From: Piromyces finnis finn
Lineage: Eukaryota; Fungi; Neocallimastigomycota
Direction of reading: 5' to 3'
Assembly (NCBI GenBank): GCA_002104945.1
Contig: MCFH01000004.1
Location: 1,240,001-1,304,000, forward strand
Length of the DNA stretch: 64,000 nt
Shown here: in pieces, positions 1,671-64,000 of the stretch
Numbering within the stretch: position 1 is the first letter of the stretch
How the letters are laid out: every line of letters starts with the position of its first letter
Notes under the pieces: model-generated
The model's database searches: none
The model's input: the letters and a program-made list of their open reading frames with translations, nothing else
Told to the model about the DNA's origin: nothing
Program-made: the position numbers and the translations under genes

Positions 1671-4600
1671 ATGCTCACCTGGTGGGCTTTTGGTAATATC
1701 TGCTTATTTGCAGGTTTAATTTATATATTTTTACAGTATGGTATTCCAATTTTATGGGATAAGCTTCAAGAAAAATATGGATTTAAAATAGGATTATATA
1801 ATTTTTATAAATATAAATTTGAATTTTCGGCTGATAAGATTCATGGTATTAATAAAGGTCTTATTATAAACAATGTTGGTTCTATTGAAAAAATTAATAT
1901 GACAGCTTTAAGAATATTGCCAAAAATATCCTTTTCAAGATTAAATAAGCATTGGTTTACAGTTGAAATCCAAAATCTCTGTATATTAATTGATGGTAAA
2001 AAGATCAAAAAAAATATTGGGAATATTAAAAAAAATAAAACGAAAAAAATAAAACCTAAAAAAAATAATAAATTAAAGAAAAAATTAAATAAATTATTTA
2101 ATAATTTTATTAATAGTATTTTAAATAACAATGCACTTCATTTTATTCTTAATAATGTAATAAAACACCTATTTGCAATTAGTATTGAAAATGTTGACAT
2201 TCGTTATATTACTTCACAAAATACTTTAATAAATTACCGCCAGGATTTCATTTATATCTATTCAGGAATAGAACCTTCAACCATTATAAGTGTAAATACT
2301 GAAAATTCTAATAATTATCAGGACTTTTTCCTCAGAGTTCTAATATCACCATTTTCTATTAACCATTACCAAAATATTAAACTCTTACCTGATGAAAAAC
2401 TTGTATATGATTTTAATTATCAATTAACAGAACCAATATTCGAAAATATTAATAAAGTGACCCCATTATTGATGTCTGAGGAATCAACTGAATTTACATT
2501 AAAATGGACTAGCAAAATTAATTTTAGAAGAAATATCGAACTTGGTATTTATATTAATGGATTTACTATTGAAATAAATGAAATTAAAAAATTGATGAAA
2601 ACATTAAAACAACAAAATAATAAATATAATAGTAGTTCAATTAGTGAAGATAAAATTATTAATGATACTGAAGAATTTAAAGATATTATTGATAATAAAG
2701 ATAATAAAGTAACTCAGTCAATAAAAACTACTAATGAAGTAAAAGATGACTTCCTTGTTCAAAATTCAAATAACGAAGATGATATTAATTATGATATAAT
2801 TGAGACAGTTTTAGATTACTTAGATGCTTTGAATATTCATTTAAAATTTAATATTAATCGTTTAGCAGTTATTAAAACAAATAATAAACTTTATTCACTA
2901 CCATCAATTTTATTAACATTGAATAAATTATCTCTTGAAACATCAATTGTTTCGGTCCCTGAAACAGAGAGACAAATTATTCACGATTCAACTTTTGAAA
3001 TATATGATCTTGTAGTCGATCTTTTCAATGGCAAAATGTCAGCTATATACCTTGAAAATAATGAAATGCAATTATTCCGTTTACCTTATTTTTCGACAAT
3101 TATTAATAATTCATCAATAAAGGATATTCGAAAAATTGAAGACGTTTTTAATTGTTGTAATCTTTTTCAAATATTAGTTGATTCTCCAGAAATAAATGTA
3201 TGCGAAACTTATGTTTCAATGATTTTAGAAGAATTATTCTGTAGTAAAAATATAAATAATGAATTAAAAGTAAGAAGAGGACCATCCATGTCATTTTCAT
3301 CAGCAACCTCGAGCTTTGAAAATATTAGTGAAAATATTATTAATGAAGAAATTGAAATGAAAAAACAAAAAAAGCCTATAAGTTCACCTCAAAATAAATT
3401 GATTTTAACAATTTTAGAGTTTTTAACAATATATACTTCAATACATATTGTCAATCCCAGTTTTAAAATGAGGTTGTCAAAAAATACTGTTCGAAGTCAT
3501 TTACCAAAATTTCCATCTCATCATTTTTTAGTTTTCGCTACTCATATTGATGAAATATATATTAAAGGAATTGCTCATAATATTATTTCGAGTAAAGAAT
3601 ATCATTCATATATGGAAAAATTAAGATCTAACAATATGAATAAAAGTAGTACTGAAAAATCACCAAAAAATCTTAAAATTGATAGAGATGTATTATATAA
3701 TATTCTTAGAAGTGATTTATATGATCCTGATTCTAATATAAATTTTAATATTGTATTTAAAAATTTTTATGTTGACACCAAATTAGTTAAGCAGGGTGAT
3801 GTATATAATTTATCATATAGCAATGAAAAAGATTTACATATGGATAATTTTCAAATAAATTTAAGTCTTTCTCTTCCTAAAATTAATAGATTTGGAAATG
3901 TAGAAAAAAATATACCTACAAAAGGTAAGTTATTATTATATTTTAAAAATATTTTAATTGTTTTTATTTTTAATAACATATAAATATATAACTATTTATT
4001 AATTAACTATTTAAATATTTAATATGCTAAATTTATCGAAATTATTAAATAAATATATGATTTGAATTTAAAATAGACGATTTAAAAACAGATATTATTT
4101 TATATTTCAACATGAATGAAATTATTGTAAATTTTACAAATTCTCTTGCAGCAACTAAATATTATTTGGTTTTTGCAACTAGTTTAATGAAATGGAAGTA
4201 TATATTAGAAAGTAATAAATTATATGTAAGATCAAGAAGTTCAAGTATATCATCATTAAGTAGGAGAAGTACAAATGCATCAATTGATTCGCATCAAATA
4301 AAATTAGACAATGAAATTTTGTCAACTGATTTATATAATGATATGAAAAAAAATACAACAAAAGACCAAAAATATAAAATTTATAAAAAGAATGTTAAGA
4401 ATAATAAAGAGGAACTAAATATTGAAAAAATAATTCAAATGTTTATGAGTAATGTTGAATTGTCTACTGATATTTTTTTATCAAAAATAAGTTTTTCATT
4501 ATTTGATTTATATGATACTAGTGGTATAAATTTAGAAATAAATGATTCATTAATATGGCTAAAATTATTAAATAATAAATCAAATCATTTAAATGATATT

Positions 4601-7600
4601 GATAATAAATTAATAGAAGAAGAAAATTATAATAGGGTTAAAAGCGAAAGGTATACTAATTCAAAAGATAATACTAATATAGAAGGTCATTTTTCAATGA
4701 GCGAGATATGCGGATATATACAGGATGCATCAAAATGGAATGAACCTGAAAATATGCAACATAGATTTTTAAGGTTAACTAAATTAGAAGGAGATTTGAA
4801 TAATAAAAACATTATTAAACCAGAAGACAATAATAATGATATTTTCGAAACAATAGAAGATAATATTAGTGATGATTGCTTAAATATAAGTGTAAATCTT
4901 GAAAAGTTAGAAATATTTTATTCAATTAATATTCATTATGCATTATTTTCAACATTCGTTAGTTTAACAAAATGGTCAAGTATTATTAAGTCTAAAATTA
5001 ATCTTCCTTATGGGAAGCATAAGAGAAATCTTTCTTATATTAATAATATTAATCTTACAAAGAAAAGAAGAGATTCAAAATCTGATCATGTAGTAGAACT
5101 AGAATCTCTTACTAATATTCATGAAGAAAAAGGTGATACTCAACAAAAAAAGAAAAAAATAATATTGTTTTCATTAGATATTAAAGCCATTGATTGCGAA
5201 TTAGAATTACCCAATGAAATTCGTTTGTATCTGTTTATTCAAAATATAAAATTTAATATGAATAAAAATAAAGAAATAGGTGTTTCCATTAAAAAAATCA
5301 CAGTTTTAGTTCCTCCTCAAATTGATGGAGATAGAGATCTATTATTAATTACTGAAATCAATGCTAATATATATAAAAGAGAGGATAAAAATAAACTAAA
5401 AAACATATTGATTATTGATATTGGAGGTGATAAAATATCAATGACAGTTCCATTTGGATATATTTTTTCTGATATTATTGAGAATGGTGTAAATATGTTT
5501 AAGTCAACAAAACAAATTGCTGTACGTTTAGTTAATACAGCCGTTAATCCTGTTACCCATATCAATCCAAATAATATCCCAGAAGTTAATGTTTTTTTCA
5601 ATACATTTTCACTTTTCTTCCTTGACCAGAAATTTGAATCGAAATTAGGTAGAAATTATAAAGAAAGTTTCAATGAACAAATTAGTAGATTAGCCAGAGA
5701 TATTGCCTTTAATAGAAAAGTTGAAGCATTAAGAAGCGTTTATAAACAAGAGCAGTTGAAGAAAAATTATGATGAAAATAGAAAATCAAATAATGAGGAT
5801 ATTGGAAATTATATAAAAGATCAATATGATGCAAAAGAAAAAGAATATGTTAATAAAGTAATTGGTGAAGAACAATTAAATACTATAAATAATTCTTCTA
5901 GTGAGGTAGAAATTGATAGTGCAAGTAGTAATAATAATAATAACAACAACAACAACAACAACAATAATAATAATAATAATGTTAATTTAGATTTAAGTTA
6001 TCAACAACTAGAGAAAAAAATTGAGAATATTTGGTATCTTCTTCAGGAAATGAATTCTAAATTGTGGATAAAATGCATAAATAAATTGAAAGGTGAAAAA
6101 TTTAAACCAATGGTTTCTGGAAAAATGACCGATTTAAGTATTAAATTAAGACCACCTGAATTATTAGCTCCTACAGTACAAGAAACTATTCATATTATAG
6201 ATAATTATTGTTCAAAAGACAGTAAATATGATCTTTTAGTTCCAATAAATATATATGTTTCTGTGAGTAGTTTCTCAATTAATTTAAGAGATTATCCACT
6301 GCCATTGATTAATGTTCCGATTATTACTGATAAACCTCATTCATCAAGTTTAACATTGTCTGGTTTATTAATTATTGCAGAACAAAAAGCATTCAAAGAA
6401 TGTATTAGATATGTTAAAGTTCCTATTTTTCCAAATACCGAACCTGTTCATGTATCTCGTACTATTAACCCAATTAAAATGTATACTCGTTTAAAAATGG
6501 TATGCTCTTCTCCACAAAAAACATTTATATCTTGGGGTTTCTCAACTGATCCTGCTTTAACAGATATGATTCGGGTTATTGATGGTTTTACAAAGGTGAA
6601 TGTTGATATAAGTGAAAACATTATTTGGTGGGATAAAATCCGATTAAATATGCATGGAAGATTTGGATTAGACTTTGTTGGTGGTGCAAACTTACATGTA
6701 AGGTTATTAGGTTCTTTATCTCCATATTTTGATGGTTTGTATCATTCAGGTACGGATGGTATTGAATTTGTATTTTCAAAAGGGGCTTCTGTTACATTAG
6801 GTGATACTGGTATTCCTAATACTCAATTGTATATTAATTGTGGGGAGTTTAAATGTGTTGTACCAAGAGCTAAATATGAATCTGTTATTAACCCAAGTGA
6901 AAATTTATTAAATAAAGTTATTGATCAAATTGATGAAGAAACTGTCATTCGTTTTTCAGGTGATGTCCGTCTATCTGTTGGTTTTGAATTTGTACCAATA
7001 TGTGATGAATATTTCACTAAACCTCGTAAACATAATGAAATTGTGTTAAAGGTTCCACAACATGCTGTTCTATACCCAAATACAAAGGTAGATAAAAATA
7101 TAAACTAGTTATATTAATATTATTTATTATATGTATTATTTTTTTTAATATTACTAAAAAATATTTTAAAATTTAACAATAGAAATTTGATTCCTATGCA
7201 GGTTTTCGATCAAAAGAAATTTTAGTATCATTATTTATTGCATCACCTCCACCACTATTTTCTTCTCTAAATTATCCATTAAATTCAATACATTTATCAC
7301 CATTTTCTCTTAACCATATTTCTTCATTAATGCCGTATTTCTCATCACCTATAGGATCTCTTCCAATTCGTATAGGTAAAATATTTAATGTAATGTTACC
7401 AAGAAAGAGACCAGCATCATTTAAGAGTGTAACTTTAAAGGCATATTTATTACCAGCAATATTGGGTTATGTTAATGGTATGAATGTTAATGAAGGTGGT
7501 GTAGGTTTACGTATTAGATCTCAAAATGCTGATATTGCTATATGTTGGAAAAAAGTGGATAGAGAAATTATTGATAATGATATTGATTCTTCAAATAAAA

Positions 7601-49518: not shown

Positions 49519-50874
49519 ATGTCTGATTTTACTGCTAACAATAATGAAAACACAGAATTTTATGATAATCAAAATGAAATGTAAGACTCATCTTTAAAAA
49601 AAATAATAATAAATATATATAAAATAAATTAAATAAGAAGAAGATATTTGAAATCCATAAATAAGAATTGAAAGGAAATTATTAAAATTGAGAAATAAAA
49701 ACATAATTTTATTAAATTGAAATGTATATTTAACATAATTTCCAAAAGATATTCCTTTTTTTTATGTAATTATTAATGAATATTAATGAAATAAATGCTC
49801 ATCAATAATTTAATTGATAAAAAAATAAATATATATGAAAAATTTTAAATCTTACAAATTTTACTTAATTATAATGAAATTTCACTATTTTTTTTAGAAG
49901 AAAAAGGGTAAAATAATGATAAAAAAAGTAAATAGAAATTATAATATTTATAAATTTTATTACATCATCGCTATTAATAATAAAGGAGCAATAATAAATT
50001 TATTTCAAATATGTTAAAAAAATATTTTAAATTTATTACTGATAATGTTAGAAAATTGTATATACATTAAATCAAAAATAATCTAAAGTGATTTAAATCT
50101 AATTATTTTTACCCTTTTATTTAATATGTAAAAACTTATATATATTTATTTATTTAAATACTCTTATAATGTAAAGTAATAATGATGAAATAACTGATCA
50201 AAATAATAATAATCAACAAGAATTAAATTATACTGAACAAAGTGGTAATACAAATGGATTAAGTGAAATTGAGAAAAGAAAATTAAGAGCTAAGCGTTTT
50301 GGGATCCCATTGAATGATGTAAAATTGACAGAAAAAGAAAAAATTGAGCAAAGAAAAAAACGTTTTGGAATAACAGGAAAAGAAGAAAAAAAAAGTAAAA
50401 GTAATAATGGTATGTAATAACAATAAATATTGTATAATTATTAAGAAAAAAATTTCAAGTATTAAAAATATAAAAAAAATATTTAATGTTTAATAAACTA
50501 AATTATCATTAGGAAATAAGGTAAATTAAAAGAAAATTAATAATTATATTATTTTAATGATGATTTGTATAATAAATTAAATTTTTTTTAGTATAATTAT
50601 ATTTGAAAACTATATTAAAATAATTAATTATATATTTTATATTTAAAAAAAAAAAAAAAGACTGATATTGAAAAAGTAAAAAGAAGACAAGAACGTTTTG
50701 GGGTTACAAAAGGCCTTTCAAAGAAGTTTTCAAGTGTTATAGAAGAAGAAAAGAGACAGGCTAGATTAAGAAGATTTAATGTAAGCATATTATATATATA
50801 TTAAGCAAAACACTTATAAATTAATTAACATTTGTTATTTTTGTATTATTGTTCTATCATAGCAAAACAAATAA
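49519..50874 (+). CDS. Tho1/MOS11/CIP29-like mRNA export factor (KxRAxRFG repeats), apparently lacking a SAP domain
   Basis: Exons: MSDFTANNNENTEFYDNQNE; ...EIEKRKLRAKRFGIPL...KIEQRKKRFG; DIEKVKRRQERFG...EEEKRQARLRRFN; QNK*. The repeated RxxRFG motifs are typical of the Tho1/MOS11 C-terminal region. Confidence 0.7.
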
Positions 50875-53079
50875 ATGAATTTAAGAAAATCGAAGCAATT
50901 ACATAAATTATTGCTATTATAAATTTATTAATACTTAAATATTTTATTTTTTTTTAGATAAAAAAATACTATATGTGACTTATGGGTATTATATATAATT
51001 ATGTTTAAAAATATTTGTTTAAAGCAAGTTGTTAATAAATCATTTATTTAATTAATCTAAAATTTCATACTTATTAATTCTAAAAATATAAAATTAACAT
51101 TATAATTAAAGAGAATACCACTAATGATAGAACAAAAAAAAATAATTTTCATGGAATTGTTAAGTAAAATATGTTAATATAGTTGTATAATAGTTGATAA
51201 AAAATTATATATAATTTTAAAGAAACATAATTATTCAATATTAATTATTTTCCTTAACAATTTTAATTTAATTTAATGTGGATTTTCCACACTTTGAAGA
51301 TTAGTTTTTTCATAATTATTTTATTTTATAGCATTAATACATTAATTAAAATATTTATATTTATGTTAAAATATATATTATCATAATTTTATGTAAAATA
51401 AATAAATATCATATGATAACTAATTTACTTTAATCTTAAAGCTTTATACTATTTGAATATTTTGATATTATGCCTATAATTAACCACTATAAATTTTATA
51501 CTATTCAATAGTTTTAATGAATTTAAAGTTCATTTGATTGGATGTATGTATTTCCATCAATTAAAATTTAAAATACATCATCATTATGTTATGATTGGAT
51601 AAAATTTTTATATGACATTAAACTTTATTGTTAGTAATATAATACTAATACATTAGAATATATTAAAATTATATTAAATTTTGTTTTAAATATAATTTAA
51701 TTTACAATATTCTTGTATAGATCTAAAATCCATAATAAAAATTAAAAATTATATATATATATTATAATTAAATCATTTAATATAAAATAGTATATTAAAC
51801 ATATATTTTAATAGGTAGAATATTTTATACTTGATTAATATAATTTTAATTGTTTCATATATTATCATTACAATATAATATAGCTTATTTATCATTATTA
51901 TTTATTCTTTCAAATAATACATACATAAATCACATATTCTAACCTTTTGTAATTTGTTATTTAATAATTATCTTATATTAAAAAGATAATAAAATTATTA
52001 GAATATTAATAAATAAATAATGGATAATGTTTTAATCGCAAATATTTATTTATATAATATTTATCATTATTTTATAGATAATAAATAATACTTGCTTTAT
52101 TTCATCATTTTTTTTTTAATGATATATATTTATAATATATTTATTAATTAAATATATATAAGATTAATAATATTAAATTGAAAAGTTATTTTAATAAAAT
52201 TTTATAATTTTTTTTATTTTTTTTTTAAAAAAATTTAAGAAAAAATAAGAATTTATATTTTCAATATTGGTAAAAATCATAATTTAAAGAAACTTATTTA
52301 ATGAATATTTAAAATCTTAGAGAAAGAAAGAAGAAAGTTTTGATATAACAATATAAAATAATAACTATATTACTATTAAATCAAACTATATAGTATTCAA
52401 TAATTAATATCGATAAAATTAAAATTTAACATTTGGAAAGAAATTCATCGTAATTTTTAAATCAAATATTTTTAAAAACGGAAGAAAAATAAATATTAAT
52501 TGGATATAAATAATAATTAATTAATAATTATAAAAGCAATAATTTAAAAAATTAAATTATATATAATATATTAACATGCATAACAAAAGAGAGAATTATT
52601 ATTCAAAACAAAAATATATATATCAAATTTCGATGTTAATAAAATTTTTGTAATTTGAATTTTCTTATTAAATGATATATCTTAAACTAACCGTATAATT
52701 TTTTTTTATGAAATATTTTAAATATATAATATCAATATGAATTAAATAATATTAATATTTAAAGAAAATTTAAGTCAAGGTATATATTTATTTATAAAAA
52801 TAAAATTTATACATACCGAGGAATTTGGAATAGATATTAAATTAAAGCTTTAAATTTTAATATAATACAAAAATTGTATTTTATAAATATTTCAATTTAA
52901 AATTATGTAATTGTAATTAAATTATTTACAATAATTAAAATTTTAAAGCTAAATATATGTAACTCTATTTCTATTAAACCCTCAACATTTAAAAAAGATA
53001 TATTTATTGATATTATTTATTGATTATTAAAATTTACATTCCATTAAACTTAATAATTATTAAATAATTATGGTTATAG

Positions 53080-54959
53080 ATGTCATCAGTCTTTGTTATT
53101 TCTGCTCCAGCTGAAACTACTAAGGAAGAAGTTGTCAACAGTCTTCGTTCTAAGATTTCTGGACAAGCCGAAATTCGTCCATTCAGATTACCAGATTTCA
53201 AGGTAAATTTATTATTTTTAATATAATAAAATATAAAAATTAAATGCTCATCAAAAATAACGATTTTTATATAAATATTATATTTAGATCGGTACTTTAG
53301 ATTCTCTTGTTGTTCTTTCTGATGATTTAGGTAAATATGACCAAGCCTTTGAAGGTATTACTGCTAAGATTGCTGAAAATCTTAAATCTTTAGTTCATGG
53401 TGATGTCGAACAATGGAAAAACAACTTAATTGTTGATGACAGTAAATATCAAAAATTGATTTTAATAAAAATATATATTAACATTTTTAAAAAATTCCTA
53501 TTAATAAATTATATTGCAATAAAATAATTTTAATTTCAATTTTAATAGAGAGTGTTGACGATTACCTTCAAAGTTTCCAATGGAATGATATGAAATACCG
53601 TACTGACAAGAGTTTACGTGAAATTTGCGATATTATTGTTCAAGTAAATAAAAAAATCAATAATAATAATAAATTAATGAATTCAATTTTTAACAAATAC
53701 ATTATTGTATGAAATTTAATTTTAAAAAAGGATGTTAACTCTATTGATTCTCTTATGAAATCAAGAATGACTAAGTACAACTTAGTTAAATCCCAACTTA
53801 CTTCTTTACAAAGAAAGCAAACGTAAATAATCATTTTAATTATCAATGTTTTTATTTTTATTTAATGAAATATGGAAATAACTTTAAACAAAATAATTAA
53901 TTTAAAATATTTAAATTTATTAGTGGTAATTTAGCTGTTAAGAGTTTAGTTGATATTGTTAAGAAGGAACACTTTGTTTTAAATTCTGAATATCTTACTA
54001 CTTTAATTGTTGCTGTTCCAAAGTAAGTGATAATATAAGCTAATATAACTAAGTTTAAAATTCAAATTGTTTTAAATGAAATTAAATCTATAATTGATAT
54101 TAAAGGTCACTTGTCAAGGAATGGTTAGCTTCTTACGAAACTTTAACTCAAATGGTTGTTCCACGTTCTTCAGTGTAAATATTAGATATTTAACGAAAAG
54201 AATTTTATTTAAATATAACAAGTATATATTTAATGCTAATATAAACCTTTATCTTTATATTTCCATAAAAAATAGATTAATTGATCAAGATGATGAATAC
54301 AGTCTTTACAACGTTACTTTATTCAAGAAGGTTGTTGATGATTACAAGAAGGCTTGTAGAGAAAGAAAATTCCAAGTCAGAGAATTTACTTTCGATGAAA
54401 ATAAGATTAGTCAAGAACAAAAGGATCTTGCTGCTATTTCTGCCGAAGAAAAGGATCAATGGGTATGTAGAAATAATAAAAAAATATAGTATAATAAGAA
54501 AAAGTCTAAAATAATACTTATTAATAATACCATAAAATATTATAATAGCAAACTTCCTTACGTTTATGCAAAGCTAACTTTGGTGAAAGTTTCTCTTGCT
54601 GGATGCACATTAAGGCCTTAAGAGTTTATGTTGAATCTATCTTACGTTATGGTCTTCCACCAAACTTCCAACCAATGATTATTAAGGTAAATATTTTATA
54701 ATTTTGTTTTTTAAATTAAAAAGTTTAAACTTTAAATAAATGAAGAAATATTAATTATAATTTTAATAATAATTAGCCAAAGAACAAGAGCGAACGTAAG
54801 GTTCGTGAAATCTTAGCTCAACACTATGCTAAACTTGGTGAAAAGAATGGAGAAGAAAAGAAGAAGAAGAAGGAACAAATTGATGAAAACATTCAAATGT
54901 TATTAGGTGACAAGGATTACTATCCATATGTCTCTTTCGATATTAACTGGAAGTTCTAA
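53080..54959 (+). CDS. VMA5: V-type ATPase V1 subunit C, about 9 exons
   Basis: FRLPDFK|[18 protein letters not shown]; FQWNDMKY; [33 protein letters not shown]; FQVREF; [27 protein letters not shown]; DYYPYV. Confidence 0.95.
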
Positions 54960-55723
54960 ATTTAACAAAATTAATTTTTAAATTATAAAAAAATAATTTA
55001 TAATATACATAAAAAAGATAATATAAATTCATTTTAGAGAGAATTTTTTAATATACATTAATTAAAAAAATAATAACAATAAAAAAAAAACCTTTTTTAA
55101 AAGGAAAAATTAAAAGGATAAAGAAAAAAATTAATAAACTTATTCTTTTGATATTTTAAAAAATGTTTTTTCTTTTATAAAATAATATATACAAATATTA
55201 CTCAAACTAATAATAATAATAAACCAAACAATAGTATAAAATTAATTAATAAATAATAAAGCAAAATCAAGATAATAAATAATAATATTATGGAAAGAAA
55301 AAAAATAATAATAAAAAAATAAAAAAATTATAAAAAATTAAATAAATACCAACAATATATAAATTAAATATAAAAGAAAGTTTATTTTTGTGATATTTTT
55401 TAAAATTTTAAATTTTTAAAAAAGAAAAAAAGATGATTAATACAAAAAAATTTTAAAATAAAGCTACAATACAAATTAGAATTTCTGTATAAATATATAT
55501 AATTTAAATAATCTATTTTAATTATATTTTTTTTAAATAGATGGTATATACTTCTTTTTTATTTTTGCTTTTTTAATTTTTATTACTGTTTTAAATTATA
55601 TTTAAATGATTAAATGGATATATAAATAATATATAATGATAAATAATAGTGTTATGAGTATAAAATATGAGGGTCTTTAAAAAAAATAAAAAATAAAAAA
55701 AAATGATAATAATGTTTTTATAT

Positions 55724-57169
55724 TTATAATATAGTAAGCTTAATTGTTAATATATGAGTTTCTCTATTAAATTGTGCAGTTCCTTCTTCTGTATCAATTA
55801 ATATTGGTAATTTTAATTCAAGTAAATATTTATCCTTTGTTTTAAATATAATTTTATCCTTTTCAATATCTACACTGGATTCTTTCATATTTTCCTTTTT
55901 TATTAAAATATCATATAAATTATTAAGCATTAATAATAATTAATAATCTTTTAATATTTTGTTTTTTAATTAATTTTTTCATTATTAATTTTTCTTACAA
56001 CATCCTTTAGCTTAATATCAATTATAATATGTGTTGCATTTTCTCCTTTTGGTTCTTTCCTTATCTCATAATCTGGCTTTGGAAGAGTCTTTTTTGACTT
56101 TTTCTTTATATTTGTAGTGTCAGATATTACATTATCAATTTCGGAAATTGAAGGTCTTTCTGGTCTTCTAATAAAATGCTTTACAAGCTTTCCCTTTGCT
56201 CTCATTTTTGGTAAAGTAAATTCTGTTGTTCCATGAATATTTCAATTATGATGAAATTTACAAAATAGCATTAACATGTGTTATAATTTTTTTATCAATA
56301 TTCCATATACCAATAATACTTTTAAATTAGATTAAAATATATTTAATAAAAGAGTGTTAATATTACCTCTACTTAATTTTAATTTATATTTTTCTTCAAC
56401 CCATTCTATTGCCAATTCAATTAAAAAAAGTTTATAATCAAAGTCTTTTGTTGCTTTAATGATTGGATTTGTGTTAACACATGCATCAAAAACTATACAT
56501 GTTTTACCGGCTTTTATTTTTTTATTTTTTTTTTTATAAAGAATAAATTAACTATTTTACTTATTATAATTATTAAATTATAAAATACAATAATTTACCT
56601 TTATCAAGGTCTGTTCTTGGAACACTTAAACTCAATGGGACCTTATATTTAGTATTATCTTCAGCTTCTACAGCTTTTCTTATTTCTTCATCTGTTGCAA
56701 TTGGTGGTGGTGGAACTTTACCACTATGACAAATATTAATAAATATCTATTAAAAAATTAGTATTTATAATTGATGTTTATTCGTATCATATTTAAAATA
56801 ATAAATATAAACTACAATATTAATGAATTAAAATTCAATTAATAATATGTTTGTTTAAAAAAAAAATACCTTTAAGCCTTCAGTAAATCCTTCTACATCT
56901 TTTAAATTGTGTGTTTTAATTACAAATCCAGGTTCAGGTTCAATTTCCATTCCTAATGAACCATTTACATTATTATTAATTGTAGTTGGAAGCTTAATAT
57001 CGGTTTTTTGTTCGGTTTCTGATTTTAATGCAGTTAAAGCTCCTAATAAAGAACCAATTGAATCAGGATTATTTCCTGATATTTGATTCAATATTTTTTG
57101 AACTTCAGGATCTTCAAGAAAACCTGGTGGTAAATCATTTATATTAAAATCATTATTATTTGATAACAT
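55724..57169 (-). CDS. PIH1-domain protein, most like Pih1/Nop17/PIH1D1 (R2TP subunit), about 5 exons
   Basis: IEPEPGFVIKT...K|VFINICHSGKVPPPP...YKVPLSLSVPRTDLDK|AGKTCIVFDACVN...FLIELAIEWVEEKY; C-terminal CS-like YLLELKLPILIDTEEGTAQFNRETHILTIKL. Its short length and DxxVN motif favour PIH1D1 over kintoun/DNAAF2, but this is not resolved. Confidence 0.82.
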
Positions 57170-57680
57170 TATCTTAAAAAGTTTTCCTTTTATTAATTTT
57201 TAAATTTTAATTTAAATCCTTTAATTCAATATTTAAAATTCAAATAATAATACTACAAAATAATAATTTTTTAATATATCTTTAATTAAAATTTTTACAT
57301 TTTTAAATTCTATTTATTTATTATAATTTTAAATATTCATTATTTATAGTTTTACTTTATTTATTACAGTAACCTTTATTTTATGTATTATCTACATTAA
57401 TTAAATTTATGTATCATGTGTTTAATAACTTATTGTATATTTATTGACTCTTCTATATTATTTGCTACTATTTTTATATTCGATGCTTTGATTGGCTATT
57501 ATTTGATAATTAATTATTCTGAATATATTTAAATGCTTGAAAATTTTATTTTATTTTGTTCCTCCTACCTAGTTTTAATAATAATAATAACGATTAAAAA
57601 AAAGAGAATTTTAAAATTATTAGTATTTTTATAAATAAATAAAAATTTTTAAAAATATTAATAAATAATTATTTGAAAGT

Positions 57681-57761
57681 AATTAAATGATGTTTGCATA
57701 AACAAACTAGAGTTTCTGAATCATATTTTGTGATTATAAACTTTCATGCCCTGATTTAATT
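57681..57761 (+). ncRNA. snR78: Box C/D snoRNA, snR78 homolog (LSU rRNA Um, yeast about U2421)
   Basis: Box C atgatgt at 57687; guide caaactagagt is antisense to LSU ACUCUAGUUUG; D' ctga 57716-57719, with the +5 rule selecting a U; D ctga 57751-57754; terminal stem aattaaa/tttaatt. Confidence 0.88.
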
Positions 57762-57870
57762 ATCTTTTAAATAATCATTTACCATTTATTAAATTAATAT
57801 TAAAAAGATTTATATAAATTTATGTAAATTTTTTAATTATTAATTTAAAATATTTAAATATGTATTTATG

Positions 57871-57958
57871 TCAGAAATGATGAAAACTTCAGATAAACAT
57901 AGCTGGAATTACCGGCTGAATTAAGAATGTTGAGAATATCTGGGCACATCTGATTAAT
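57871..57958 (+). ncRNA. snR77: Box C/D snoRNA, snR77 homolog (SSU rRNA Um578)
   Basis: Box C atgatga at 57877; guide agctggaattaccg is antisense to SSU CGGUAAUUCCAGCU; D' ctga 57916-57919, +5 nucleotide pairs the U of GGUAA; D ctga 57950-57953. Confidence 0.9.
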
Positions 57959-58059
57959 GATATAAATAATTTAAATTTTATTAATAAATTTATTGATATT
58001 AATTAATTATTAATAAAATTGTTAATAAAATTAATATATTTATAGCATATTATTATATT

Positions 58060-58156
58060 TTTAAATGATGGTGCGTCTTAGGACGCACTGGGCGCTGAAT
58101 ATATTTAATGTGTAGATAAAAATATAATGACCTTCAGAAAGTCATTCTGATAAAAA
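58060..58156 (+). ncRNA. snR76: Box C/D snoRNA, snR76 homolog (LSU rRNA Cm, yeast about C2197)
   Basis: Box C atgatgg at 58065; guide gcactgggc is antisense to LSU GCCCAGUGC; D' ctga 58095-58098, +5 selects a C; D ctga 58147-58150. Confidence 0.85.
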
Positions 58157-58260
58157 TATAATTTAAATATGTATATATATTGATAAATTTATTATTGATT
58201 CTAAATATATAAAATATTTAGTATAATAATAAATTAAATATTTTTAAATAAAAGAATATA

Positions 58261-58347
58261 ATCGAGATGAGGACTACTGATGACGAGTCAGAAGAGTTAT
58301 TCACTGTTGATAACCTTTTTTCTACCATTCATGCAAAACTGATCGAT
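58261..58347 (+). ncRNA. snR75: Box C/D snoRNA, snR75 homolog (LSU rRNA Gm, yeast about G2288)
   Basis: Terminal stem atcga/tcgat; box C atgagga at 58267; guide gatgacgag is antisense to LSU CUCGUCAUC; D' caga 58289-58292, +5 selects a G; second element ccattcatgc is antisense to nearby LSU GCAUGAAUGG; D ctga 58339-58342. Confidence 0.9.
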
Positions 58348-58452
58348 TGTATTTAATAAAAATTAATACTAATTAATTTTTAAATATTTTATTATAATTT
58401 AATATTATTTTTAATTAATTAGTATAATAATTATTTGTATAAAAATTGTTTA

Positions 58453-58535
58453 TCTTTAATGATGACAATATTTAAAAATAGACAAGCATATGTCTAAATA
58501 TTTTATGTTGAAAATATTTTAAAGTCTGAATTGAT
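58453..58535 (+). ncRNA. snR74: Box C/D snoRNA, snR74/U27 homolog (SSU rRNA Am28)
   Basis: Box C atgatga at 58459; guide agacaagcatatg is antisense to SSU CAUAUGCUUGUCU; D' ctaa 58494-58497, +5 selects an A; D ctga 58526-58529. Confidence 0.9.
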
Positions 58536-58620
58536 GATAAATGGAATTTAATATGATTTTAAAAATAATTTATATAAAATAATTATTTAAAATTATATTT
58601 GAGATATTGTAAATAAGGAA

Positions 58621-58705
58621 CTTTAATGATGAATTAATTTTTCACGACGGTCTAATGAAATATAATGATTAGACTGCCTGTGACAAGGCTTTAATACTGA
58701 TAAAG
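58621..58705 (+). ncRNA. snR73: Box C/D snoRNA, snR73/U35 homolog (LSU rRNA Cm, yeast about C2959)
   Basis: Terminal stem cttta/taaag; box C atgatga at 58626; guide tcacgacggtcta is antisense to LSU UAGACCGUCGUGA; D' atga 58655-58658, +5 selects a C; D ctga 58697-58700. Confidence 0.9.
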
Positions 58706-59409
58706 TTTCTTTTAATTTTTTGATAAATTTGTTATTATAAATATAGTATTAAATTTTTTATTTAAATTTTTATTGTCCAAAAATTTATTATTGATGTCCG
58801 AAAATATAAGTTTTAAAAGATGTGTTAAGTCCATGTGAATAATTTTAACAATATAAAATTATTAATTGTTCAAATTTTTATGTTAAAATGGAAAAACTGA
58901 GTAGTTTTTAAATTATAACTATTATAAAGTTGTATGAATTATTTTTTATATTTAAATTATTTCTAAATATGAAAATGTATATTTCAAAGATATTTATTAT
59001 TTGTTATTAATTTTATATGAAATGAAAAAATTATAATGTAAATTTAAAAAGTTATATTTAACTTTATTCAAAAATGACTATTATTATTTTTATTATTTTT
59101 ATAAGTAATTGATTTTTTAATATGAAATTTAATATCTTAAATTTATTATATATTCCAATTACTTTTAATGATTCAAATAAATTAGAAAAAAGAATAGGTG
59201 ATATATTTAAGATTGGTTCTAATGCTGCATGTTTCTTAGAAGAATATGTTGTCTAACAAAAATTAAGATGTTAAAAAATTTTTTGATGGGTTTAGTAAGA
59301 CACCTAATATAATCAAGAGTGTCGACGTCCTACCGCTATGGTAAAGGAAAATTTTTAATGTTCCGCACAGAGTTAAGTGTTTGTACTTCTTTGAATGAAA
59401 ACATTATGA

Positions 59410-59827
59410 ACTAACGATTTTATTAAATTATGTTATGATTACCCAGAGTTTGCCTATGGTTTCTATTGGCTTCGATTGAAAGCAAGAAGTGGATACAAGT
59501 TGGATGATAGAGTTGCCAAAGCTGCTAAATTTATTGATCCTGTTTGTCCTAACTACTGTCCATGTTGCAAGAGTGGCGATTAAAGTATTAAACATTGTTT
59601 ATTAGATTGTTCAACTTTTAGAGATATCCATATTAAACATTACAATCCCATAGTCCAGTTATTAAATTTTTTTTCAGTCAACGTAATTCCAACAGTCCTA
59701 TCAATAATAATGAAAATGTTAATAGTAGTAGAGATAGCAATAACATTAATAGTAATAATAATAATTTTAATAATAGTAGTAGTATGAATAGTAGTGAAGA
59801 TGATAATTCTACTTTAGATAGTAATTT

Positions 59828-59883
<56 letters not shown>

Positions 59884-60480
59884 GCGGTGAATATTAATGT
59901 GTATGCTTATTCTAGTGTGTGCAATAAAATATTTAAATTTCTTCTTGGAGGAAAAAGTTTTAACAATATCAATTACAATTCAAGGGAATGGAAAGAACTT
60001 TGCAAGTGTCAGATTCAATCGGGCACTAATGAAGGAACACCATTCTTGACGGTAACCGCAGAACTTCTACTAACCAAAATCATGCCTTTTGCTATATTGG
60101 TCAGCAATGGTCCATGTTCAAAAAGTTTGAAGCAACAGCTAAGAGCGTCAATGCTGAAGAAACAGCAAGACAGGCCAGGAAGACCGGCGCAACCAATGGA
60201 GATCCTAATATTTGTTCCATGATAAAATTTTGATCTTTGGCTCGGTGTCCCATTGGAAGTCAAATACAATTATTATACTTTAGTATAATAGTGGCTTTCT
60301 TACTTTAATTAAAATGACTCGAATACATTATACCCAATTTTTATTATTTGTGTTTATTTAAACCTTTTTTTTTTTTTTTTTTTTTTTATAACATGTATTA
60401 TATGTATTATAATTTTAATTAAATTAATAATAAAGTTTAAAAATAGTTGATGATGTTAAAACAAAAAAAAAAAAAGAAAA
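59410..60480 (+). mobile_element. Decayed, 5'-truncated copy of the same LINE (zinc-knuckle region, 3' UTR, degenerate poly-A)
   Basis: Aligns by eye to about 25195-26303 (gattttattaaattatgttatga...; cctaactactgtccatgttgcaag; gatctttggctcggtgtcccattggaagtc; aataataaagtttaaaa...gttaaaa followed by A-rich tail). Contains a nonsense change (caa to taa near 59581) and indels. No TSD found. Confidence 0.93.
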
Positions 60481-61237
60481 TCATGGGAGAGCCTAATACT
60501 ACTTTTTTTTTTTTTTATTTCCTTTAGTAGGAAGTAAATAAATTAAATTGCAGAGTTCATTGAACTTTTATGCAACCTAAATTATTTTATTTTCTTTTAT
60601 TTTTATATATATTTTTTTATTATTTTTATTTATCATTATAATGAAATTTCACAAATTAAATAAATACAAAAAGAAAAGTGTATTCTCTTCCTAATGAAAA
60701 AAAAAAAAATAGATTTTAGAATTAAAGACAAAGATAACAAAATTATTTAAACATATTTACATAGAGAATAAAGATTTTATAGTTTAAATTTTTTTAATAG
60801 ATTTATATAAACTTAATAAAAAAAAAAAACATTTTCATATAAAAGTATATCATATATATTTATTCTTTTCTTTCTTTAAATATTTATATAAAATAAAATA
60901 CAAAATGCATTATTTTCACATATAATATTATCTTTTACTAAAAGAATTAAAGACATACTATTCAACTAACTAATAATAATACATCATTACTAATATTTTA
61001 AAAGAAAAAAAAAAAAATTAATATTAATAAAAAAAATAAATTATTAAAGATTATTATATTATGAATGCTTAAAATCTAAAATTGCTTTTATTGTAAATGT
61101 TAATACAATGCAATATGTATTTATAAGTTGTTGTTGTTGTTGTTTTTTTTTTTTTTTTTTTTTGATTATAATAAATATACTATATAATTTATAAATGTAT
61201 TATGATAAAATAAAAATATAAAAATTCAATCTAGATT

Positions 61238-63127
61238 TTAAACTGGAGATCTTCTGCCACTGCTGTAGTGATATCTTGGTCTACGATCACGTTCGTATCT
61301 GTCATAACCTCTGTCATAGCCTCTATCATAACGATCATATCTATCATAACCTCTGTCTTGATAGCCACGTTCATATGGTCTATCATAGAATCTATCTTGA
61401 TAGCCACGATCATAGCCTCTACCATAATCTCTACGATCATAACGTGGTTCACGTGGATCATAACGATCAATTCTTGGATCATATCTATCTGGTTGACGGC
61501 GACCCACTATTTAATTAAAAATTATTTAATATTAAAAAATATATAAATTTTATTATTAATAATTTATAATTTATAATATTTATTTCAACTATAAACAATT
61601 ATTTCTTAATTTATTTTTTTCTTATATATTAAATTCATACTATATCTTGTTGGTCTTCTAGCCTTAGCGCCATGGTATCTACCTGGAGTTGGAGTACGTG
61701 GTCTTCCTCTCTTAGCCTATATATTTAAACGATCATATATATTATATATTTTAATATTATTTCTAATAAATAATGATTATAAGAACGTCATTTATATTGA
61801 TATATACCTTTTCTATAGTAATTTTCTTTCCATCGAGTTCATAACCTTGTAATTGTTCTCTAGCCTTATCAGCAGAATTATTTTCTTCAAAAGCAATAAA
61901 ACCAAAACCTCTGAATTTACCAGTATGTGGATCATACATAATTTGGCAATTGCTAACCTATAATAAAATAAAATAAAAATAATAACATTTATTAAACTAT
62001 TTATAACTAATTTATAATTAAAATATTAACACATACCTCACCATACTTAGAGAAAAGCTTCTTTAAATCTTCTGGCTTTGTAGTAGAAGAAATGTTACCA
62101 ACATATAAGTTATTACCCTTGTTTGGTGCATTATCAGCTCTATTTATAATTGAAAATACATAAAAATTACATTAATATTTATTATATTTTTATATTTTTC
62201 ATCCTTTTAAAAAATACTAGAATAAAAAAAAAGAACAAATGTAATTATTAATTTAAAATAAAATAATAATAAATTGTTGTAAAATGATGATAAATATGTT
62301 TATGTATTGAATTCATTTTAAAACACTAATATAATTTATAATGTATTTATATCTTTACATGGGGATAGGTGAATGTGGTGAGTGAGTTCTTTGAAGAGAA
62401 TGAGCTCTTTGTGGTGAATGAGCTCTTTGTGGAGAACGTGACATAGATCTTTCATGTGAGCGTTGTGGTGGAGAATGTGATCTTTGAGGTGAGCGTTGTG
62501 GTGAACGTTGAGGTGAGCGGGACATACGTTGTGGTGAGCGGGACAAGCGTTGTGGAGGTGAACGAGGTGAACGAGAGTCTGCTATTAATGTAAAAAAAAA
62601 TGTTTGATTATTTTGACAACATTTTTTGAAAAAAATATTTGTATGAATGTGGTGATACATAATAAAAATTGAAATTTCATAACTTATAATAAAAATGAAA
62701 TACATAATACAGAGAAATATAAATGTGAAAATAAAATAAAAAATAAAATGTGCTACGTGTAATTTCAATAAATATGCTTTTTTTCTTGCTTCTTAATTTT
62801 TCTTTTCTTTTAAAAAAAGAAAAGTACACATAAAAATTATTCATATTGTTTTTATTGAATTATACGTTTAACTTAATATAATATATTACTTAGATTATGA
62901 ATTTATATGATGTCTTAAAAAAATAATGTACTATGATTATTCATATTTTGTTTTATTGCTATTGTATTATTTTCATTTGAAGCCATTCATTGAAATACTT
63001 GATTTAAAAATAAAAAAAAAATAAAAAATAAAATCTAATAATAATATAAAAAAAAAAAAAAAAGCAATAAAAACAAAAAACAATTATTTTTCTCAATATT
63101 TTTTAAATCCTTACCGGAATCAGCCAT
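61238..63127 (-). CDS. SR-like RRM splicing factor (Tra2/SR45a-like), about 6 exons
   Basis: MADS|ADSRSPRSPPQR (RS/SP repeats); NLYVGNIS (RNP2); FRGFGFIAF (RNP1); ITIEK|AKRGRPRTPTPGRYHG, which is typical of this family; RD/RY-rich tail ending RRSPV*. Confidence 0.85.
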
Positions 63128-64000
63128 TCTAGATAATATATATTAAAAAATATAAATATATTTTGTTAATATAAGAGTTGATTAAAATAAGATTAGTTAT
63201 ATATTTTTTCTTTGATTATAAATTTAATTTTAATAAAGTAAAATTGATCTCTATATATTTCTTTGAAAATACATCATTATTTATAATATTCAATTATTTT
63301 TTAATTGATTGTTTGGTATTTATTTGTCTTAATTATTTCATCAAAAGTTAATATAGATCAAGTTTCTTTTTTAACTATATATGCAATAAAAAAAAAAAGA
63401 GAGAGAGAAAGATTGAACTACATATATAAAACTATATCAATATCCTACTACACTATTATTTTTATTTTAGTTTTCATTTCTACTAATTATTTGATGGTTA
63501 TTTTTATTTTAATTATTATATTTGTTTTCTTTTTTTTTTTTCTTTTTTTTAAAAAAATATTATATATATATATATATACTTTGCAACTTTATTTAAATTT
63601 ATGTATAAATCAAAATATAAACATTTACTTCTTTAATTAAGTTCCAAAAATTTGGTATTCGTAAATAAAATATTAAATTAAATAGATATATAAAAAAAGC
63701 AAAAATAAAAATATACAATTATAAAATATTATAATTTATTTTTACTATAACAAAAAATAAAATGAACAATTTTATTTTATTTCCTATTAGTAAATAAAAA
63801 TAAAATAAAATTATAATAATTTTGATAAAAAAATTTTTTTTTTACTTTGTTTATTTCCAAAAAAAAAAAAAAAAAAAAAAATATTATAATAATAATAATT
63901 CATTAATAATATATTGTATAATATATTTAATTATATTATTGTATTATAACATATATTAATATATATATTATATATATTAATATAACCATACATTAAACAC

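Follow-up and report, generated by a model that had tools for sequence, protein, structure and literature searches.

How far back in fungal history does a shared order of small nucleolar RNA (snoRNA) genes reach, and by what route are RNAs released from such a group? Both questions are raised by a locus of the gut fungus Piromyces finnis (Neocallimastigomycota) that lies within a 64,000-nucleotide (nt) stretch of DNA, here called the window (contig MCFH01000004.1, positions 1,240,001 to 1,304,000 of the forward strand). A first inspection of the letters, which we refer to as the sequence-only reading, had proposed that the window carries six C/D′/D units on the plus strand, in the same order as the yeast snR78-snR73 cluster. 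We recovered all six units where they had been placed. They form a cluster of six tandem box C/D snoRNA genes, named U1 to U6 below, at positions 57680-58707 (+) of the window; the cluster lies on contig C167 in our numbering (G000:C167) and is present in a single copy in the genome. Judged from the sequence, the locus is almost certainly the Neocallimastigomycota ortholog of the fungal snoRNA cluster I, and its six guides are predicted to direct 2′-O-methylation at six conserved nucleotides of rRNA. We hold with good confidence the account as a whole, which adds to this orthology a deep origin of the cluster and a probable mode of RNA release.

Six guides and their rRNA targets

All six units possess a C box, a D′ box, a C′-like box and a D box reading CUGA. 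The C boxes of U1 to U6 are AUGAUGU, AUGAUGA, AUGAUGG, GAGAUGA, AUGAUGA and AUGAUGA, respectively, and the terminal stems comprise 6-10 bp in U1, U3, U4 and U6 and are weak in U2 and U5. The unit starts are regularly spaced, 168-201 nt apart, and the box-to-box spacers measure 96-122 nt, in a window with a GC content of 13-33%. Targets were assigned by pairing the 20 nt 5′ of every D′ and D box against the rRNA of one rDNA repeat of the same genome (L004), in which Rfam places the small-subunit (SSU) rRNA at 578-2381, the 5.8S rRNA at 2630-2784 and the large-subunit (LSU) rRNA at 3009-6548. The target was taken as the nucleotide opposite D′+5, and the box registers of U4 (D′ CAGA at 58289) and U6 (D′ AUGA at 58655) were assigned by hand.

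The snR78-type unit U1 (57680-57762) is closed by an 8-bp terminal stem (57680-87/57755-62) and has its C box at 57687-93, guide at 57703-14, D′ box CUGA at 57716-19, C′ box at 57730-36 and D box at 57751-54; the guide forms 12 bp (11 Watson-Crick and one GU) with LSU 2563-2574 and selects U2566, the equivalent of yeast U2421. In the snR77/SNORD65-type unit U2 (57873-57957; C box 57877-83, D′ box 57916-19, C′ box 57927-33, D box 57950-53), the guide at 57901-14 pairs with SSU 576-589 through 14 Watson-Crick bp and selects U579, which corresponds to yeast U578. U3 (58058-58157; C box 58065-71, D′ box 58095-98, D box 58147-50), a functional equivalent of snR76, pairs through its guide at 58085-94 with LSU 2338-2347 (10 bp, nine Watson-Crick and one GU) and selects C2342, or yeast C2197. 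The snR75 unit U4 (58256-58352) has the C box GAGAUGA at 58264-70, the D′ box CAGA at 58289-92, a C′ box at 58304-10 and a D box at 58339-42, and its guide at 58279-87 directs 9 Watson-Crick bp to LSU G2433, yeast G2288. U5, of the snR74/SNORD27 type (58454-58533; C box 58459-65, D′ box CUAA 58494-97, C′ box 58505-11, D box 58526-29), pairs over 13 Watson-Crick bp of its guide (58480-92) with SSU 25-37 and selects A28. Finally, the snR73/SNORD35-type unit U6 (58619-58707; C box 58626-32, D′ box AUGA 58655-58, C′ box 58665-71, D box 58697-58700), closed by a 7-bp terminal stem (58619-25/58701-07), forms 16 bp (15 Watson-Crick and one GU) between its guide at 58639-54 and LSU 3097-3112 and selects C3102, yeast C2959.

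The six rRNA segments named in the sequence-only reading were thus all present in the rDNA of this genome, where the guides pair with them and D′+5 selects the expected nucleotide. Published site tables assign Am28 to snR74, Um578 to snR77, Cm2197 to snR76, Gm2288 to snR75, Um2421 to snR78 and Cm2959 to snR73. The intervals between successive LSU sites (91, 133 and 536 nt) are nearly equal to those between yeast positions 2197, 2288, 2421 and 2959 (91, 133 and 538 nt), and the targets are therefore homologous nucleotides. Each RNA would assemble with fibrillarin, Nop56, Nop58 and Snu13, and the antisense element of 9-16 nt located 5′ of D′ would direct 2′-O-methylation of one universally conserved rRNA nucleotide, namely, A28 or U579 of the SSU rRNA or C2342, G2433, U2566 or C3102 of the LSU rRNA.

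Two of the units carry further elements that can pair with rRNA near the target. In U4, which is closed by a 10-bp terminal stem, the element CCAUUCAUGC (58325-34) pairs with LSU 2452-61, 19 nt 3′ of the target, and ranks within the top 2.4% of the null distribution; this is the extra base-pairing described for snR75. In U3, a 5-bp stem (58127-31/58141-45) that precedes the D box bears the loop CUUCAGAAA, similar to the GGCCUAGAAAACC element conserved among other fungal snR76 genes. Part of this loop, CAGAAA (58135-40), is complementary to UUUCUG at LSU 2334-39, which overlaps the target of the guide, and snR76 accessory pairing in such an arrangement has been reported (van Nues et al. 2011, PMC3116282). 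U3 has thus probably kept the snR76-type accessory pairing with rRNA.

U3 also contains a perfect 7-bp hairpin at 58071-88 (GUGCGUC-UUAG-GACGCAC), whose 3′ arm includes the first 4 nt of the guide. The stem is retained, with an altered loop, in the sister species described below, and the insert is not present in other fungal snR76 genes. In U2, the D-side region AAUAUCUGGGCACAU that precedes the D box (57940-57949) is invariant between P. finnis and the sister species. We found no rRNA target of 9 bp or more for it; only its GGCAC pairs, with SSU 563-567 near U579, and the region may represent an accessory pairing element or an orphan guide.

Family assignment and conservation

The units were compared with the Rfam covariance models, first at the curated gathering cut-offs and then with E-value reporting over 2.5 kb. 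U4 scored 57.7 bits with snR75 (RF01185; cut-off 40) and U6 scored 37.6 bits with snR73 (RF01207), barely above the cut-off of 37. The best scores of three other units lay below the cut-offs: 40.1 bits for U1 with snR78 (RF01176; cut-off 48), 41.3 bits for U5 with SNORD27 (RF00086; cut-off 52) and, for U2, 35.8 bits with SNORD65 (RF00571; cut-off 41) and 32.9 bits with snR77 (RF01181; cut-off 50), two families of the same clan. The latter match is nevertheless the best that the snR77 model finds genome-wide, and all the sub-cut-off matches of U1, U2 and U5 are full-length, keep the guide and D′ box in register and have E values of 3e-5 to 4e-4 over 2.5 kb. These three units are functional and positional equivalents and, by the Rfam cut-off, not family members. 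The sequence-only reading had named Rfam models among the checks on its assignment; this check bore it out for snR75 and snR73, left snR78, snR77/SNORD65 and SNORD27 close to the cut-offs but below them, and failed for snR76.

The failure at U3, along with the low scores of the three units just named, weighs against the assignment of the whole set to cluster I. The Rfam model of snR76 (RF01209) gave no match at U3 in a genome-wide scan, and the only Rfam match of this unit was to snoR118, a clan relative of snR76, with 19 bits and an E value of 1.4. Likewise, a custom covariance model built from nine fungal snR76 genes, whose RNAalifold structure is itself doubtful, did not reach significance at U3 (9.6 bits, E = 0.33). 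The alignment of these nine genes contains two invariant elements, the guide GCACUGGGC and the stem-loop GGCCUAGAAAACC before the D box, and U3 carries the guide GCACUGGGC. The assignment of U3 to snR76 is thus a reading of its guide, the register of that guide, the AGAAA loop, the position within the cluster and the conservation in the sister species.

This sister species was found by a protein search with the open reading frame (ORF) of exon 1 of the neighboring PIH1-like gene (see below), which retrieved a 90%-identical ORF on 23 metagenome contigs. Eight sister loci were fetched; in all of them, the six guides recur with unchanged order and with unchanged orientation relative to the PIH1-like gene. 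From box to box, the P. finnis and sister sequences are identical at 66/68, 74/77, 82/86, 76/79, 66/71 and 73/75 positions of U1 to U6, respectively; the identity of the units is 93-97%, and only 19 of 456 unit positions differ. All the guide nucleotides and all the C and D boxes are unchanged, and the D′ box of U5 reads CUUA in the sister and CUAA in P. finnis. The spacers of the two species, with lengths of 122/126, 111/123, 113/118, 116/163 and 96/182 nt (P. finnis/sister), are essentially unalignable. Since units and guides are conserved amid unalignable spacers, the comparison provides strong evidence that the six RNAs are under purifying selection. Attempts to reach further relatives yielded little: DNA-pattern scans of the genome and viral contigs returned only chance bacterial matches, a protein search with the sister exon-4 ORF recovered only itself, and one further match to the PIH1-like ORF (57% identity) lay on a 906-nt contig too short to reach any cluster.

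The same data speak to the idea that the units are chance look-alikes or decayed pseudogenes without function, to which we assign a negligible probability. It could draw on the four of six units that score below the curated Rfam cut-offs and on the degenerate D′ boxes of several units (CAGA, CUAA and AUGA). Against it stand the few differences from the sister species in units flanked by randomized spacers, the invariance of the guides and the C and D boxes, and a target register that is exact at six of six sites. Moreover, 13-mers antisense to rRNA number 24 on both strands of the other 63 kb of the window, mostly directed against AT-rich expansion segments, and three within the 1-kb cluster, all on one strand and all adjoining D′ boxes. 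This distribution, the Rfam matches for five units and the conservation of all six in the sister species together exclude a chance origin.

The immediate surroundings added no member to the cluster. Neither an E-value scan of positions 50000-64000 with Rfam nor an antisense k-mer scan revealed a seventh unit or further snoRNAs beside it, and a pair consisting of a C-box-like motif and CUGA at 58789-58900 was rejected as a snoRNA, as it has neither a terminal stem nor complementarity to rRNA. No second copy of the cluster was found; matches of 73-83% to the spacers elsewhere in the genome reflect low-complexity AT similarity.

Gene order and the age of the cluster

In P. finnis and in the sister species, the units follow the order 78-77-76-75-74-73 on one strand, as in the published 5′-to-3′ order and as the sequence-only reading had maintained. 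The S. cerevisiae polycistron snR72-snR78 (Qu et al. 1999, Mol Cell Biol 19:1144; van Nues et al. 2011, PMC3116282, which includes deletion and rescue) shares with the P. finnis locus the same six guide functions, the order, the single strand and the short spacers. Of the accessory pairings of the yeast RNAs, that of snR75 is retained in P. finnis and that of snR76 probably so. The yeast cluster has, however, a seventh gene, snR72, at its 3′ end. We found no guide of the LSU A876 type in or near the P. finnis cluster, whether at its 3′ end or fused to the first snoRNA. In Pezizomycotina, the snR78 and snR72 guides are fused in one RNA, whereas U1 of P. finnis is a single guide; its reading as a 78/72 double guide was rejected because the D-side is not complementary to the region of A876.

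P. finnis does have the snR72 function, at an unlinked site. Two box C/D snoRNAs lie on another contig (L130:1476-1580 and L130:1806-1890, corresponding to approximately 705,330-705,750 of G000:C178), and the first of these is directed by a 13-bp D′ guide to A1032 of the LSU rRNA (context CUGA*CGUGCAAAU), which corresponds to the yeast A876 site of snR72. The register of this guide is that of the 78/72 double guides in the metagenome loci. The spacer between the two snoRNAs contains AAAAAAG|GTAATA, a candidate back-to-back acceptor and donor.

The sequence-only reading had inferred that, in an early-diverging host, the gene order would have been kept since near the base of Fungi. The host does belong to such a lineage, the Neocallimastigomycota, and the inference of deep conservation holds. 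The novelty is smaller than had been assumed, as the cluster has already been published outside Ascomycota: Luo et al. (2013, PMC3596301) described 'cluster I' (snR78-77-76-75-74-73-72) in Ascomycota, three Basidiomycota and Rhizopus oryzae, and reported that most fungi lack snR72 in the cluster and that snR76 is missing in Schizosaccharomyces and Rhizopus. P. finnis, in contrast to these two, keeps the snR76 function. We found no snoRNA work on Neocallimastigomycota in the open literature. With P. finnis, a known cluster gains a new, deeper member, and the genes themselves are ordinary housekeeping genes.

In a second reconstruction, Canzler, Stadler and Schor (2018, PMC5824354) worked with the same families (CD_5, 24, 12, 7, 21 and 31) in the same order as in P. 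finnis and concluded that the genes, until then dispersed, came together at the root of Ascomycota and that the 25S-A876 guide was an innovation. Both conclusions are contradicted by P. finnis, through its cluster and its unlinked guide of the A876 type. Between an ascomycete origin and the older one implied by the clusters of Basidiomycota and Rhizopus (Luo et al. 2013), the P. finnis result favors the latter; it also shows that Rhizopus and Schizosaccharomyces have lost snR76 secondarily and that the A876 guide is no ascomycete invention. From the shared gene order, we consider it very probable that the cluster already existed before Chytridiomyceta/Neocallimastigomycota diverged from the lineage of Mucoromycota and Dikarya.

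In metagenomes, a search pattern of the snR75 type gave at least 90 loci. Among the matches listed, 41 loci have at least three of the six guides in the canonical order, 20 have at least five and three are out of order, and no AT-rich contig occurs among them; the remaining 45 listed loci are probably chance or truncated matches. One locus (L044:4897-6300, GC 0.38) has 77-76-75-74 in the usual order and an snR78-type guide approximately 0.9 kb downstream, on the 3′ side, and is a rearranged version of the cluster.

Precursor, neighboring gene and release of the RNAs

We propose that the six genes are transcribed as one non-coding RNA polymerase II precursor, which would start in a 510-bp region common to the cluster and the divergent PIH1-like gene, and that in P. 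finnis the RNAs are released without one intron per snoRNA. Transcription by RNA polymerase III was rejected, as runs of T4-T6 occur inside U1 and U4. The evidence on release lies in the five AT-rich spacers, at 57755-57876, 57954-58064, 58151-58263, 58343-58458 and 58530-58625 (+). In P. finnis, a single long A-U hairpin dominates the fold of each, with z-scores of −3.2, −4.5, −1.5, −1.7 and −1.0 for spacers 1 to 5, respectively. Against a background of length- and GC-matched AT-rich sequence from the same window, the fraction folding as stably was 0.042, 0, 0.067, 0.025 and 0.26 for the P. finnis spacers and 0, 0.125, 0.62, 0.017 and 0.15 for those of the sister species; combined by hand after Fisher, these fractions give approximately 3e-4 and 2e-3 for the two species. 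Spacers 1 and 4, and spacer 2 in part, have thus remained stable while their sequence turned over. As controls, the yeast-like locus L067 showed AGUA-capped stems with modest z-scores and the clearly intronic locus L055 showed none.

With only 4-10 G residues per P. finnis spacer, every GT and AG could be listed. In spacer 2, the sole AG lies downstream of the sole GT, and spacer 3 has an AGT in which the two dinucleotides share one G, plus a late AG without a following GT. A canonical GT-AG exon is therefore impossible in both, and likewise in spacer 2 of the sister. The sequence-only reading had noted GT/AG candidates and left the choice between intronic and polycistronic units undecided; this caution was justified, and the listing now excludes one snoRNA per intron at spacers 2 and 3. 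U2, U3 and U4 at least would thus lie in one uninterrupted segment and must be separated by endonucleolytic cutting. Most plausibly, an RNase III-type enzyme would cut at the long spacer hairpins, and exonucleases would then trim the products to the terminal stems. That P. finnis uses such a largely splicing-independent polycistron we regard as roughly an even call. In the absence of exons between at least some units, it would resemble the yeast polycistron; the spacers differ, since those of yeast form AGNN-capped stems cut by Rnt1p and those of P. finnis form long hairpins of pure A-U, and the genomes differ as well, yeast being intron-poor and P. finnis having approximately 4.8 exons per gene according to the published figure.

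Several observations weigh against a polycistron of this kind. The strength of the hairpins is not conserved at spacers 3 and 5, and their loops consist of A and U only, none of them being the AGNN loop used by yeast Rnt1p. The latter absence has no bearing on a generic long double-stranded substrate for RNase III. Outside Saccharomyces and its close relatives, cluster I has so far always been described as intronic (Luo et al. 2013, PMC3596301), and zero-length and tiny exons are documented in a fission-yeast host, that of S. pombe snoRNA61. On its cluster strand, the sister species carries AGGTA five times, where 0.45 per kb would be expected; four of these motifs lie 21-44 nt 5′ of the C boxes of U1, U4, U5 and U6 (taag|GTACTA, atag|GTAAAT, aaag|GTAAAT and aaag|GTAATT) and the fifth lies after U6, and the sister spacer 5 contains the polypyrimidine-CATAG acceptor TTTTTTTTTCCACTGTCATAG. 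In addition, AGs located 53, 71 and 80 nt past the D boxes of U1, U3 and U4 are conserved.

These signals point to a different layout of the same cluster with the same function, namely, a spliced non-coding host with micro-exons of 0-16 nt, in which U1, U4, U5 and U6 would have introns of their own and U2 and U3 would share one, with splicing, debranching and exonuclease trimming freeing the RNAs. The hairpins in the spacers would then be incidental or would only separate U2 from U3. This layout, to which we give a substantial but lesser probability, agrees with spacers 1, 4 and 5 of P. finnis, which permit AG-exon-GT with room for exons of 16, 14 and only 5 nt, respectively. It also agrees with the GTA motifs found 8-53 nt 5′ of five of the six C boxes, which together with the AGs 53-80 nt after the D boxes resemble L055, a six-unit intronic version from a metagenome with spacing similar to that of P. 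finnis. The zero-length exon in the S. pombe host and the intronic cluster I of Euascomycetes, Basidiomycota and Rhizopus supply the precedents. Intronic clusters with a UHG-like host (Luo et al. 2013, PMC3596301; Liu et al. 2009 for N. crassa, PMC2780460; S. pombe SPNCRNA.659, bioRxiv 10.1101/226894) have the gene set and order of P. finnis, and share with it a non-coding context without a long ORF. They contain one snoRNA per intron and exons of tens of nt, whereas P. finnis has two spacers without room for an exon and lacks consensus donors.

The details of the P. finnis sequence tell further against micro-exons. No canonical exon is possible in spacer 2 of either species or in spacer 3 of P. 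finnis, and none of the candidate GTA donors has a G at −1, which is present in 11 of 18 donors inferred from the coding genes of the window (61%, a rough figure, as some of these donors are false positives). AGGTA does not occur in the 848 nt of non-snoRNA cluster sequence, and the number of GTA motifs in the spacers is close to that predicted from composition. The sister segments bearing splice signals are insertions relative to P. finnis, and those with the best signals, in spacers 4 and 5, are absent from it. We lean towards the splicing-independent polycistron in P. finnis, derived from an intron-hosted ancestor, the splice signals of which would survive in the sister species for four units and be weakened or lost in P. 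finnis.

It is distinctly improbable, in our view, that the six genes are transcribed independently, each from its own promoter in the preceding spacer, with the order being merely retained synteny. The AT-rich spacers do contain many TATA-like strings, and in some N. crassa clusters each gene has a putative promoter, though the genes are co-transcribed. Yet spacers of 96-122 nt offer little space for a terminator and a promoter, their sequence is not conserved between the two species, the spacing of the units is regular (168-201 nt between starts), and all the characterized homologous clusters are co-transcribed.

The gene on the other side of the presumed transcription start is a multi-exon member of the PIH1 family (55724-57169, −), arranged head-to-head with the cluster, with its start codon at 57169, 510 bp from U1. 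Its exons, searched individually rather than as a spliced protein, matched the Pfam PIH1 N-terminal domain at 56600-56746 and 56368-56508 (E values of 3e-7 and 7e-8) and PIH1_CS in the last exon at 55724-55930 (2e-10), and the sister species (L196) has the same head-to-head arrangement. The predicted protein may be a box C/D snoRNP assembly factor of the Nop17/PIH1D1 type or a dynein-assembly paralogue; if the former, an assembly factor and its client RNAs would share a promoter. The intergenic region common to the gene and the cluster, 57170-57679, is probably a bidirectional promoter. In a pairwise alignment, two blocks are kept in the sister amid diverged sequence, TTTGATTGG at 57487-95 and GTTCCTCCTACCTAG at 57558-72. 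The former reads as an inverted CCAAT box of presumed function, and the latter, which is pyrimidine-rich, may mark a start site, act as a TOP-like element or serve as a 3′ splice site; the region also contains TATAAATA at 57630-37.

On the 3′ side of the cluster, degenerate fragments of a non-LTR retrotransposon with a zinc-knuckle-like C-terminal motif occur at 59160-60300 of the window and at L196:1450-1600 in the sister species. The insertion seems to predate the split of the two species.

The analysis yields six snoRNA genes that had not been annotated and predicts six methylation sites in rRNA, with a seventh from the unlinked A1032 guide. It traces a synteny block of six non-coding RNA genes to the ancestor that zoosporic anaerobic gut fungi share with terrestrial fungi, which would place this arrangement among the oldest conserved RNA gene orders in the fungal kingdom. 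More tentatively, and on balance we doubt it, P. finnis may have been caught 'de-intronising' an ancient intron-hosted cluster; it would have lost the segments and splice signals that the sister keeps around four units and would now use A-U hairpins for release, with the PIH1-family gene, a possible box C/D snoRNP assembly factor, head-to-head under a bidirectional promoter. If true, this would be an independent, convergent repeat, in an intron-rich fungus, of the change described for Saccharomyces. P. finnis and its sister species form a tractable pair in which to follow the switch between intron-dependent and intron-independent release of snoRNAs.

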